This document shows, piece by piece, positions 16,253 to 23,800 of a DNA stretch of 64,000 nucleotides. Position numbers and translations under genes: made by a program. Each line of letters opens with the position of its first letter. Within the stretch, counting starts at the first letter, position 1. The notes beneath the pieces are model-generated. The model worked only from the letters and a program-made list of their open reading frames with translations, did no database searches and was not told the origin of the DNA. This stretch comes from Salpingoeca rosetta (taxonomy: Eukaryota > Protista > Choanoflagellata), in contig JAWQFM010000010.1 of assembly GCA_033442325.1 (NCBI GenBank), positions 1,558,923-1,622,922 on the forward strand. The letters are read 5' to 3'.

Positions 16253-19200
16253 CTACGGGAAGATGAGACGGTCGCGTGAGGTAATGACGTCACGGCACCA
16301 CGGGCACGTGTCGGAGATTTCCTCCACACACTGCGAACAGATGCAGTGGCCGCAGTTGAGGCGGATGTTCACGGGCCTGCGGACAAGCGTTGCATTGCGA
16401 GCGAGTGTGGGTGTGAACGTGTTGCAATGGGCGCAAGCGTGGGGAGTGGAGTGTGTGTTGATGGGTTAAAGGGGGTGACCACAGGTCTTCTCAGTGAGAC
16501 AAAAAAAAACGTGTCGGCAGAACTGTTTCCACACCACAAAGACGAACACACATGCACACACATGCACACACATGCATGCACATGCAAGTAAAACGCACCT
16601 TGCCACGCAAATCTTGCACAGAAGGTCCTCGTCATCATCGTCGTCGTTGCCGTCACCACCATCCACCTCAATCGGTGGAGCAGAGGGACCACCACCCTCA
16701 CCACCACCAGTAGTGTTGTTGTTGCTGTTGTCGTTGTTGCGACGGCGTGTGCGCGTGCTGCTGCTGCTGTTGTTGTCATCGGTGCTGGTTGACCTGTACT
16801 GCACCTGGTGGAAGAAGAGGAGCGGCTGCACGTTGTTTTCGTCGGAGATGAGGCCGCCTGCCTCCTCGGGGTCGCGCACCGACGGAAGACCAAAGTGCAG
16901 TGACGCGTACGACACGAGCACAAGCACGACCAGGAACAGGATGCACCCGGCCAGCCGTGAGGCGGAGAGGATGGCCAGGTTGGTGGTCATGGGGTTGCAC
17001 ACGCCGTCAATCACGCGCTTGTAAGTCGGCCAAAACGTGGCGCAGTCGACGCTTGCCGCCACCTTTGGCCTGCATGAACACGGGCGCGAGCACAAATACG
17101 AATTGGGCAGAGGGCAAGCACGGTGAGCAACCACAAGCGCTTCCTACACAACGCAGTGCAATGTGCAAACAAACAAACAAACAAACAAACAAACAAACAA
17201 AATAACAAAATAACAAACAAACAAAATAACAAACAAAATAACAAACAAACAAACAAACAAACAAACAAACAAACAAACAAACAAACAAACAAACAAACAA
17301 ACAAACAAACAAACAAACAAACAGAAGACAAACGAAACTGACAGCTGCTGTTGTAGGTCGTTAAGCCCTTGTTGCAGAGCGATTGCCGCGGATTGAAACT
17401 GTGGTGCGTTCTCACGCGTGTAGTTCACCACCAGCTGTGCCGCCAACACCCCCTCCTGCGCCTCGCTCTGGGCCTGTCAGATGCGGCTCAACATGAGGTG
17501 TATGCCAACAACCCAAAAAAAAAAAAAACGGTGCACAAACATGCGTATGCATCCATTGCATTTTGGATGGGGTTGCACATCAACACATCACATCCATGCG
17601 CGTTCACCTGGTTGATGTCTGGCTGAAACGGACTGGTGGTGTTGCAGAACAGATAATACGACACATACGCATCGTCCTCCGCAAACTGACAAACCAAGAC
17701 CGTGGATGATGAGACGAGGTGGACGCAGACAAGGTGTGAGCTGAGGAGATGGCGCAGAGTGAAAAGTGCTCGCAGCGCATGAACATGCCAGAGTGCATGA
17801 AGATGTCAGAGAGATGCGCTCCCACGCACGACAACGGGTTGTGGCAGCTGATCATGCACATACGCGCCGCACAAACCTGGTGGATGAGGAAGGTGGTGGG
17901 CTTCATGCACACGTCGGAAACGCCAACGGCGGCCGCGCTCTCAATACCAACAACGGCAGAGAGGATGACGAGACAGATGGCACCTGGTGCACGCGGTGGT
18001 GGTGATTGAGTGGTGATTGAGTGTGAGGTGGTGTGGTGTGGTGTGTTGACACCGGCAGTGGCATGGGGCAATGCACAGAACAAAGCCATACACATACAAA
18101 GGAATAGACACATTACACCTCTGCACAAGATAAACAAACAAACAAACAAACAAACAAACAAACTCCCAGACACAACTTGTGGACGCAGATGAGCATGTGC
18201 AAACAAGAGCGCGCGCACGCACTGATGATGATGGATGTGATGAGTTGACAGTAGCTGCGGCAGGCCAGGGCCACCAGCAAGAGAATGAGCGCAAAAACAG
18301 CAAAGGCGACGAGGCCAAACTCGGCAATAGAGCGGTAGTGGTTGTATGTCCGCGCATCCGAATAGAACGAGTCAAACTGTACATGACAATACCAAGGCAC
18401 AAGCAAGCAAAATGAGCAACGAGAGGGGCGAGTTTTGGCCCGGGGGGGGAGGGGAGGTGAGAGAAGAAAGGGATGGGAAGGGTGTGGGGGAAAGGTGACG
18501 GATGTGAGAACGGCGAAAAATACAAGAGTCAGTGAGTGTAAAAGCTCAAGCACGCCGTGCTGCTTCCAAAACACGCACACACACACACACGCGCGCGCGC
18601 ACACACACACACACACACACACACACACACACACACACACGCACACACACGCACACACACCCACACACACGCGCGCGCGCGCGCACGCACACACACACAC
18701 CTCGAAAGTGGGTGCGGATCGCACGACCGAAGAGAGGGAAGACTGAAACGTCTGTGTGCCGGACACAATGTCCTGGAGTGCTCGTTGCACGTCCTGTGGC
18801 GCACTTGCCTATTGGTGTTTTTGGTGCAACGAACAGTGCAGTCAAGTGTGCGGTGTTGTGTCAGTGGCGGAGCAGAAGCAGAAGATAACACGAAGGTTGA
18901 ACCACTGGTGGAATTCAGGCGCAGACACGCGCACGCATGAGCACGAAACCTCCCCCCCCCCCGAGTCATACCAGGTCACGCTGCAGGCGTTGTGCCATGT
19001 TGAGCGGGTCCGTGGCGTCAGAACCAAGGTTTGAGACGGAGGTCAGCGCCTTGTTGTACTTGTTGTCCAGGCGCTCGACGTGTGAAATGGTGTCTGTCAC
19101 GGCATCCGTGGTCTCCACGTTTGCATAGATGCACGCCACCATCAATAGACTGCATGGAGGGCGTGGGGATGGGCAAGAGATTTGGGGGGGGGGAGGAAAC

Positions 19201-20892: not shown

Positions 20893-23800
20893 TTATGGAA
20901 AGATCAAAGGGTCGCGGGAAGTGATCACCACTCGACAAAACGGGCACGTCGTTGTTGCTCGTTGTTCGCGCATGTACGCGTCGCAATGAGAACAGATGCA
21001 GTGCCCACAGGACAAGCGAGTGTCGACGTTGCTGGTAAAAACGCAAGCAGACACGTCAAGCAAAGCCGAAGAGTAAGCGTGAGCTCGAGTCGTGTGTGTG
21101 CTGGCCTCTTGCACACTCGCCAGCTCCATGAGGCTCACCATTTGCTGCATGCCAGTGGCATCTCAACATCTCCCCACACGCAAACAGGACACAGGCTACA
21201 TGCAACGGCAACACTTGTATCTTGCATGAGAGTGAGAGAGAGGATGTATATATGTGTGTAACTGCAGATCCACAGGCAGCCACTTCATTCGCACTCACTG
21301 TTCATAGCAGATCTTGCACAGGAGGTAGTTGTTGCTGTCATCGTCGTCGTCGTCGTCATCAGTTCGTGTGGTATTGGTGCCATTGTCATCCTCTCTTGAC
21401 CCTTGAACGCCAGCGTTGAGTAGCATGTCCTGGGTGGGCGCATGCTCGACGTCCAGAGCACCAAAGTCGATGGTGATCGGCGCTCGACAATACGGGCAAC
21501 GGCCGTTCAAGCGCGCAATTCGGATCGAACACTCGGAGCATAGCCAGTGGCGGCATGTCAACTGGACAGACACATCCCTGAAGTAGGACAGAGCAGACAC
21601 AGACATTGGTTTTTTGTTTTGGGGGATGCGCGCGGAACACCAAACACGAAGCAAGCATGTGAGTCAGTCAGGCACCAGGTCGCCGAATCAAGAACAGCAA
21701 GCAAGAACTACGAGCCAACGGAAGCAACACAGCAGCAAGTGAGCGGGTAGGCCTGGCGAACGTGTTCGTCTCGCAGCTGCCAACTGTACATCTTTCACAC
21801 AAAGTACAATCGCCATTACTGAACATGCAACACATACCTATCACAGCAGATGTGGCACAAGGAGTCGCTTTCCCCATCATCACCCCCCTGTCCACCTTCC
21901 GTGGAGAGGGTGGTGGTTGTTGTGTCTGTGCTGTTCGTGGTTGAGACAGGAACTTCAATGGGAGGGGCCGATGGAATGGGGTGCGTTGGGACGGGAGCAG
22001 GTGGGGGCTGCAGTGGTCGCGGTGAGTCCAGAATGAAGCTCGAGGGAAAGCTGGTGATGCTGATGGTACTGATCGGGCCAGGGCTGGAGTTGTTGCTGCT
22101 GGCGGCGGAATCGCTCGCATCACTGTCTGAGTCGTTGGTGATGCGCCCGCGACCGTTGTTGCGGGTCCATATCAGGAGGGGCTCGACCAAGGTCGAGGGA
22201 GGGTCATGTGGATTGGTAGGATTGGTGGTGGTGATCCTTGTTCTGGATGTACGCCCTCCTGGTCCTGTCCCTGGGTGCTGGTTGATATGGTTGTGAGGAA
22301 CGCCAGTGGGTGGCGGAATCGTGTTTTGGCTGTCATCGCCGCCGTTCTGGTGCTCCTCGTTCATGCCACTATTGTCGCTGGGGCTGGGGTCCGTGGTCGA
22401 CGACCCAGTGTGATCGGTACCGATGCGTCGCACGCGGCGGGGGTGGTCCCCTTCTGGTCGCCCGGTTGTGGTGTGCTCTCGTCCACCTTCACGTGGCTGT
22501 GGCTGTGGCTGTGGTTGTGGTTGTGGTTCCTGCTGCTGCTGCTGCTGCGACTGCTCGTGTTGCAAGGTGCATGACGCAAGCACAAGCACAACCAAGAACA
22601 AGGCACAGCTTGCCAGGCGCAAGGCTGCGATGATGCTCAGGTTTGTCGTCGCTGGATCACACACGCCGTCCACGACACGCGTGTACTGCTCCCAGAAGGC
22701 CGAACAGTCAATTCTGCCCACCACACCTGGCCTGTTCAACACAACGACGCACGGCGGTAAGCATGGTTGCCACATGAAAGTGAGAAGAAGTGGGCACAGC
22801 ATATCAACATGTGTATTGTTGTGTTGTACCTTCCGTGCACATACAGAGTCAACAAGGCAGAGATGGGCACCAAGTCACACACACACACACACACATATGT
22901 TTACATGCACAGCTAAAATTGTCATCATGTCATCATGTTGCACGCACAGCTGTTGTTGGATATCCAGAAGGTCCTGGTGGAGCGAGGCGGCCTCATACTC
23001 ATACTGTGGAGCGTGCTGCCGTGTGTAGTTCAACACGCGCTGCGCCGCCAGCAAACCGTCACCAACGGCCTGCTCAGTCTGAAACGGCAAAAATAAAGAA
23101 CAGCGCAATCACAAACACGGCAGAAGAAGAGAAGAAGGCGGTGCGCCACGCGCGACTGAACCCACACGCGCACACGCACACACACTCACTCACGCACACA
23201 CAAATGGATATGCGGACGCATACATCAGTGCGGGAGGGCATGTGTGCCTACCTGGTCGATGGCTTGTTGTGACGGGTTTGGACGATCACACAGCAGGTAG
23301 TACTGCACGTACTCATCGCCCTCTGCAAACTGTGAAGAGGACAAGTACAGCAGAGAGGAAAGCAGGCAGGGTAGTGAAGGACAGCAACAAAGGTGCGTGG
23401 AGGTAATGACACGATGTCACCACACATGTCACCACAAACACTCTGTGGGTGCATGTGGGTGTGTGTGTTCACATCTCAACTGCACACACTGAACAACAAC
23501 AACAACAACAACAACAACAACAACAACAACAACAGCAGCAGCAGCAGCAGCACATGGCTGCATGGGAGTACATGGTGAATGAGAAACGCGCTGGGCTGCA
23601 TGCACATGTCCGAGATGCCAACAGTGGCCGCGCTCTCCGCGCCGACAACCGCCATCACAATGAGAAGGAGAAGGATGCCTGTAATATGTGTCGACAGGAG
23701 AGCGAAACGAAGCAGGAGATGGGATGGCGATACAGTGAACTGTCACAAACAAACAGCCGCGTCGCTGCAAACTGACTCAAGGACTGTTGCGTTTGCAACA

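Follow-up and report, generated by a model that had tools for sequence, protein, structure and literature searches.

Two tandem Tweety-RING genes of Salpingoeca rosetta share a conserved PSAPPIEV tail motif, a candidate ESCRT-I docking site

The choanoflagellate Salpingoeca rosetta carries two neighbouring genes, here called A and B, in which a Tweety-family membrane domain, a low-complexity tail and one or two RING fingers follow each other in a single reading frame. Both lie on the minus strand of the 64,000-nucleotide stretch analysed in this study (the window: GenBank assembly GCA_033442325.1, contig JAWQFM010000010.1, positions 1,558,923 to 1,622,922 of the forward strand). Their tails share the eight residues PSAPPIEV, which include a P[ST]AP core of the kind bound by the UEV domain of TSG101 in the endosomal sorting complex I required for transport (ESCRT-I). 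A preliminary description of the window had read this motif as a selected ESCRT-I docking site that would turn each protein into a self-contained module for vesicle budding or endosomal sorting. We rebuilt both genes from their open frames and GT-AG junctions, with the parallel between A and B as a guide. The features, in window coordinates, are as follows.

16253..19915, minus strand: gene A, encoding a Tweety domain, a predicted disordered tail and one C-terminal RING; 570 residues
19915-19554, 19149-18972, 18808-18701, 18376-18223, 17983-17877, minus strand: exons 1-5 of gene A
17685-17608, 17473-17343, 17069-16599, 16376-16256, minus strand: exons 6-9 of gene A; stop codon at 16255-16253
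16814..16831, minus strand: VQPLLF in the tail of A, residues 453-458; aligns with TAPQLD of the Hartaetosiga balthica ortholog
16664..16687, minus strand: PSAPPIEV in the tail of A, residues 501-508; 15 residues before the first RING cysteine
16256..16618, minus strand: RING of A, C3HC4, IAP/XIAP type; intron after CKICVAR, second half in exon 16376-16256
20893..25548, minus strand: gene B (PTSG_03975, EGD83366.1), encoding a Tweety domain, a long, predicted disordered tail and two RINGs; 851 residues
25548-25061, 24807-24630, 24453-24346, 24157-24004, 23678-23572, minus strand: exons 1-5 of gene B
23329-23252, 23078-22948, 22731-21838, 21577-21299, 21031-20896, minus strand: exons 6-10 of gene B; stop codon at 20895-20893
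22170..22187, minus strand: VEPLLI in the tail of B, residues 597-602
21951..21974, minus strand: PSAPPIEV in the tail of B, residues 668-675; 31 residues before the first cysteine of RING1
21475..21857, minus strand: RING1 of B; CHICCDR, intron, ...CPYCRAPI; Pfam zf-C3HC4_3, 4.6e-7
20896..21318, minus strand: RING2 of B, counterpart of the RING of A; CKICYEH, intron, ...CPFCRVVITSRDPLIFP

The spliced GT-AG model of gene A gives exactly the database protein P0001 ('hypothetical protein, variant [Salpingoeca rosetta]'), which matches the Pfam Tweety family (PF04906) at 1e-42 and 146.8 bits over positions 2-402 of the 431 in the profile. The database protein of gene B, P0002, matches it at 1e-30 and 107 bits, and both, like P0006 from H. 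balthica, exceed the curated cut-off of 31.8 bits. Apart from Tweety and RING, Pfam returned a weak Prominin match, and neither LRR nor SAM. All eight zinc ligands stand in C3HC4 order in the RING of A and in both RINGs of B. With the whole protein as Pfam query, the RING of A stayed short of E 0.01; its closest solved structures are XIAP RINGs (E 7e-8), in an alignment that reaches the C-terminal tail (LIFP versus KIFMS). This RING ends in ...VITSRDRLIFP, and the CA-rich places at 16537-16587 fall inside its intron.

We found that the public model of PTSG_03975 needs correction. P0002 (806 residues) matches our rebuilt B up to KICYE and then runs into the intron, ending in '...KICYEQ'. The last exon is supported by a canonical GT-AG junction (21299|21031), by 67% identity to the last exon of A and by an intron that matches its counterpart in A in position and phase. 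Judged from these splice and coding features, the public model lacks its last exon, and B is a protein of 851 residues with two RINGs, the second of which is completed by that exon and ends in VITSRDPLIFP. RING1, which is 42% identical to the RING exon of A, has a counterpart in neither A nor H. balthica. Since an intron of identical position and phase (CxxCxxR|) interrupts each of the three RINGs, RING1 is likely the product of an internal duplication of an acidic stretch together with a split RING. The two RINGs of one B chain could pair in cis.

Overall, A and B are 52% identical, and 53% of the identical residues are encoded by different codons. Within the Tweety domain, the nonsynonymous divergence (dN) is 0.37 and the synonymous divergence (dS) 1.5-2.1. 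By these sequence measures, A and B are tandem paralogs that duplicated long ago. Their duplication is younger than the split from H. balthica. Microsatellites of the (CA)n/(GT)n and GTTT types fill the introns of both genes and give rise to long spurious open frames (CVCV..., HTHT..., LFVC...). Assembly gaps (N runs) occupy positions 3399-3568 and 12047-12496 of the window.

In both genes PSAPPIEV lies in the large tail exon, where its surroundings read GGGPSAPPIEVDGG in A and PIPSAPPIEVPVS in B; the PSAP core itself corresponds to residues 501-504 of A and 668-671 of B. The reverse complements translate as the preliminary description had it, and the codons (ccc tct gct cca ccg att gag gtg in A, cca tcg gcc cct ccc att gaa gtt in B) differ at seven of the eight positions, every difference being synonymous. 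The octapeptide is the longest substring common to the two tails, taken from the fifth transmembrane segment to the first RING cysteine (97 residues in A, 238 in B). Among 20,000 shuffles that preserved tail composition, the longest common word was of seven residues (three times), and none had eight. Across the 55.4-Mb genome, a degenerate DNA pattern for PSAPPIEV occurs at these two places and nowhere else, and its reversed control does not occur. Even the shorter P[ST]AP is expected only 0.002 times in the tail of A and 0.03 times in that of B given their composition, and its rate in the open frames of the window is 0.17 per 1000 residues. The shuffles and the uniqueness in the genome rule out a chance match, and recent gene conversion is excluded as the source of the identical block because seven of the eight codons differ.

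Outside the block, the tails have diverged to a dN of 0.72 and have accumulated large indels, whereas within it dN is 0 and synonymous sites are saturated. These comparisons indicate that PSAPPIEV is very probably a selected functional motif, and that its neutral survival is very unlikely. The purifying selection that the preliminary description called clear is thus strongly suggested by the pattern of substitutions, although no formal test stands behind it and it is read from two sequences and eight codons. The position of the motif also calls for a nuance. It does precede a RING in both proteins, but in B that RING is the B-specific RING1, and RING2, the counterpart of the RING of A, follows about 130 residues further on.

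The tails share a second short block, V[QE]PLL[FI], likewise pointed out beforehand and present as VQPLLF in A and VEPLLI in B. In an extended comparison, VQPLLFFHQ and VEPLLIWTR align with TAPQLDLHR of H. balthica (x-P-x-L..H/T-R/Q). On the basis of this alignment, the VQPLLF/VEPLLI block may be the more widely conserved element of the tail. Two candidate sorting signals were also seen: an acidic dileucine-like EEAGGLI in the tail of A (window 16830-16880), common to neither B nor H. balthica, and a YxxPhi-like YSTF at about residues 440-450 of the H. balthica protein, common to neither A nor B.

The fusion of Tweety to RING, which the preliminary description had recognised in A and B, extends beyond S. 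rosetta. A search of a library of representatives with exon 1 returned one real foreign ortholog, Hartaetosiga balthica EP00055_P007015 (P0006, 539 residues), a complete Tweety and RING open reading frame from a transcriptome. It is about 30% identical and matches Pfam Tweety at 1e-29 (103.9 bits) and zf-C3HC4_3 at 1.7e-7. The fusion is independently confirmed because H. balthica carries both domains on one transcript. The same search returned P0004, a 105-residue Tweety-like first exon on a Logan SRR14727191 contig (L017 2964-3281) that is 32% identical to exon 1 of A; this contig stops directly after the exon. The remaining exon-1 matches, protocadherin and repeat proteins, were rejected, as they matched through their transmembrane or low-complexity parts. 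A homolog search with the open reading frame of the B tail found nothing, and one with P0001 returned only P0001 itself. A three-sequence profile of the Tweety domain returned P0001 and P0006 only, among the matches listed, with abundant low-complexity words, and two metagenome scans yielded no confirmed relative.

Besides A and B, S. rosetta has Tweety paralogs that lack a RING. One of them, the third paralog, lies at C1:3405966-3409304 on the minus strand, directly upstream of the gene for the mitochondrial ATP-synthase beta subunit, with the apparent end ...DDMSLYMDEYTPLFSNPSRETKIP. A review counts five Tweety homologs in S. rosetta (PMC8273234), and the searchable papers that name these homologs do not mention a RING fusion (PMC8273234).

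An AlphaFold model based on a three-sequence alignment is all-helical up to residue 430 and stays below a predicted local distance difference test score (pLDDT) of 50 from residue 433 on, with a mean of 59.9; the tails of A and B are accordingly predicted to be disordered. The pLDDT of about 30 for the RING in this model is an effect of the shallow alignment and does not speak against a RING. From the topology of the Tweety family and the needs of a RING, we infer that the tail is cytosolic. When residues 509-570 of A were modelled as a homodimer, the pair scored 0.52 against 0.00 for the best control, in a tail-swapped arrangement whose interface comprises residues 521-522, 525, 532-541, 556 and 565-570. 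Of 30 solved homo-pairs, 21 attain the mark applied to this score, as against none of 23 single chains; the runs agree on at least 93% of contacts, at a pLDDT of at least 78. The dimer model expresses a likeness to IAP RINGs rather than proof of binding, and it may echo solved IAP dimers already known to the predictor; for the claim about the motif it is a side matter.

What might PSAPPIEV bind? The sequence fits P[ST]AP, with a proline directly after the core and a glutamate at +3. A possible receptor exists, as the S. rosetta genome contains one TSG101-type UEV gene, split over at least four short exons. Its Pfam UEV match (32.2 bits, C5:2073435-2073671) spans in part a low-complexity run; the exon aligns with residues 65-103 of human TSG101 (E 0.005), keeping Y68, P71 and T92 and replacing M95 by L. 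A second Pfam UEV match, on C22, was rejected as an ordinary catalytic ubiquitin-conjugating enzyme (E2). The precedents invoked beforehand are found in the accessible parts of the literature: LRSAM1 (PMC3634660, PMC7874611), MGRN1 (PMC4670916), ARRDC1 (PMC11873033) and the vesicles of Ttyh1 (PMC11405016). In this sense, the reading of PSAPPIEV as a late domain is upheld by its fit to P[ST]AP, the predicted disordered tail, the UEV gene and the RING precedents; it is not upheld by the H. balthica ortholog, which has no P[ST]AP.

This absence is one of several points that weigh against an ESCRT-I docking site. The preliminary description had named lack of conservation in orthologs as grounds for refuting its reading, and this is what the only foreign ortholog found shows: it has no P[ST]AP and offers just STAP and PSFP. 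Of these, STAP aligns with the VQPLL/VEPLL block and PSFP stands about 30 residues before the RING, in tails whose alignment is ambiguous. The UEV of yeast Vps23 binds PSDP motifs (PMC2173515). By analogy, a P-S-x-P ligand such as the PSFP of H. balthica is conceivable, but this would be a rescue for which there is no evidence.

In human TSG101 the residues of the C-terminal part of the UEV that contact PTAP are F142, S143 and R144; the corresponding region of the S. rosetta UEV reads 'EPPLRQ', and counterparts of these contacts seem not to be conserved, the exon boundary here being uncertain. In the readable exons of S. rosetta HRS there is PPTSAPLY but no canonical P[ST]AP, part of the gene being hidden by an assembly gap, and no P[ST]AP was seen in the sequence read for the linker of TSG101 itself. 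Canonical use of P[ST]AP in S. rosetta is therefore not established. Moreover, two sequences alone carry the motif, the conserved block of eight residues is twice as long as the core that a UEV recognises, and PxxP cores are also bound by SH3 and other modules. The HRS gene itself (C7:1612904-1618000) encodes VHS, FYVE, UIM, a coiled coil and a P/Q-rich end with LLIDLS; its N gap separates the UIM from the coiled coil. Altogether, the ESCRT interpretation is plausible and has good precedents, tempered by the lack of conservation in the single outgroup, and we put the probability that PSAPPIEV is a docking site for the ESCRT-I UEV (TSG101/Vps23) at about 0.4.

The same block could be kept for another reader. 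Were PSAPPIEV recognised by a different proline-binding module (SH3, WW, EVH1 or similar) or by a lineage-specific partner, the proteins would be linked to signalling or cytoskeletal adaptors, and it would be natural that PPIEV is constrained together with the P[ST]AP core. PSAP is itself a PxxP core, placed in B inside the proline-rich run PLQPPPAPVPTHPIPSAPPIEVPV; in the open frames of the window PxxP outnumbers P[ST]AP by a factor of about 40, and the H. balthica ortholog retains at most PS.P or.TAP. However, the basic residue that canonical class I and II SH3 ligands need beside the PxxP core is missing, the flanks in A being acidic or glycine-rich, and there is neither a PPxY nor an FPPPP. 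An exact P[ST]AP followed by proline, combined with a RING in an LRSAM1-like order, is also the more specific match. We regard such a reader as possible, if on the unlikely side. A role within the ligase itself appears improbable. The block lies 15-31 residues upstream of a RING in both proteins, an acidic stretch follows it, and its conservation reaches beyond the PSAP core, as would suit an element that contacts the E2 or a substrate, exerts autoinhibition, or serves as a degron or as a phospho-switch at the serine of PSAP. Yet its spacing to the RING varies, the nearest RING in B is RING1 and not the one in common with A, and the interface of the dimer model is confined to residues 521-570, leaving aside 509-520. 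The region of the block is predicted to be unstructured.

The idea that the octapeptide is a functionless historical remnant, a lucky survivor in two diverging tails, can draw on the ease with which proline and serine words arise in low-complexity sequence, and on its occurrence in just two sequences and not in the distant ortholog. We hold it to be highly improbable. With synonymous sites saturated (dS 1.5-2.1), and large indels and a dN of 0.72 in the rest of the tail, eight consecutive unchanged residues have a probability of at most about 0.02, even at a tail identity of 36% that the alignment inflates, and of less than 5e-5 by shuffling.

If PSAPPIEV does dock on ESCRT-I, the proteins might work as follows. 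A and B would be five-helix membrane proteins of the Tweety family, whose cytosolic disordered tail ends in an IAP-type, probably dimerising RING ubiquitin ligase (E3). Docking of PSAPPIEV on the UEV would then place this membrane-anchored RING beside ESCRT-I. There the ligase could ubiquitinate TSG101 or nearby cargo, in the manner of LRSAM1 and MGRN1; alternatively, the protein could deliver both itself and the neighbours that it ubiquitinates to ESCRT for multivesicular-body sorting or outward budding. The cytosolic topology, the E3 activity, the binding to UEV and the cellular outcome are all steps that we infer for A and B. That one dimeric polypeptide marks cargo or itself, recruits TSG101 and drives multivesicular-body sorting or the release of vesicles from the cell surface seems rather doubtful to us, and we treat the self-contained budding module of the preliminary description as speculative. 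An E3 in the style of LRSAM1 or MGRN1, directed at TSG101 or sorting itself, has at least the same likelihood.

The function of Tweety proteins is not settled; roles as chloride channels, in lipid handling and in membrane bending have been proposed. The combination of Tweety, P[ST]AP and RING is a new architecture made of known parts. A choanoflagellate Tweety-RING fusion with a selected ESCRT-type motif suggests that ubiquitin-dependent trafficking has long belonged to the biology of Tweety proteins, and the fusion parallels the regulation of human TTYH2 and TTYH3 by Nedd4-2. Should the reading as one dimeric sorting or budding polypeptide be true, A and B would be, in the closest living relatives of animals, a fused cellular counterpart of ARRDC1 with WWP2, or of viral Gag, which use separate parts, and would hint at an ancient origin of the animal TTYH-ubiquitin link. 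The pair offers a compact system, in the genetically tractable S. rosetta, for the coupling of membrane shaping, ubiquitination and ESCRT recruitment. If PSAPPIEV does not bind TSG101, it would still mark a partner of a new class of membrane-embedded E3.

Several known systems share parts of this architecture. Viral late domains such as those of HIV-1 p6 (PTAPPEE) and Ebola VP40 (PTAPPEY) resemble PSAPPIE in having the same core, an adjoining proline and, two to three positions further, an acidic residue. For these motifs, as for the PSDP of yeast Vps27, binding and budding or sorting phenotypes have been measured, whereas PSAPPIEV is known from sequence alone. At the other end of the protein, XIAP and cIAP are comparable with A in having a RING at the extreme C-terminus and a hydrophobic or aromatic tail (LIFP in A, KIFMS in the former), through which the dimer of A was modelled; A differs from them in its N-terminal context and in having no BIR domains. 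Animal TTYH1-3 have the PF04906 membrane domain in common with A and B, but they have no RING and borrow their ligase in trans, while in A and B it is fused. We know of no report of P[ST]AP in animal TTYHs. Ttyh1 bends membranes and, on its own, induces extracellular vesicles (PMC11405016).

The closest functional comparisons are with proteins that bring P(S/T)AP and a ubiquitin ligase together. In contrast to ARRDC1, A and B carry a RING in cis and an integral membrane part. As a peripheral arrestin, ARRDC1 brings in a HECT ligase by way of PPxY. Together with PSAP and TSG101 it is tied, in the accessible parts of the papers, to plasma-membrane microvesicles (ARMM) (PMC11873033, PMC12245188). 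Unlike A and B, in which the ligase is covalently fused to a multi-pass membrane protein, MGRN1 (mahogunin) is not itself such a protein. In MGRN1, PSAP follows the RING, and a partner protein acts as the tether. This human RING E3 interacts with and ubiquitinates TSG101, as described in a paper that contains the term PSAP (PMC4670916), and it works as an E3 tethered to membranes (PMC13161197). In human LRSAM1 (Tal), two PTAP motifs precede a C-terminal RING, which ubiquitinates TSG101 once docked on it (PMC3634660, PMC7874611). As in A and B, its P(S/T)AP stands just upstream of a C-terminal C3HC4 RING. It differs in being a soluble protein with LRR, coiled-coil and SAM regions and two PTAPs, as against a Tweety membrane domain and one motif each in A and B. 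Orthology of A and B with LRSAM1 or MGRN1 was rejected, since Pfam finds in them only Tweety and RING, besides the weak Prominin match; the resemblance to both ligases is one of function and architecture.

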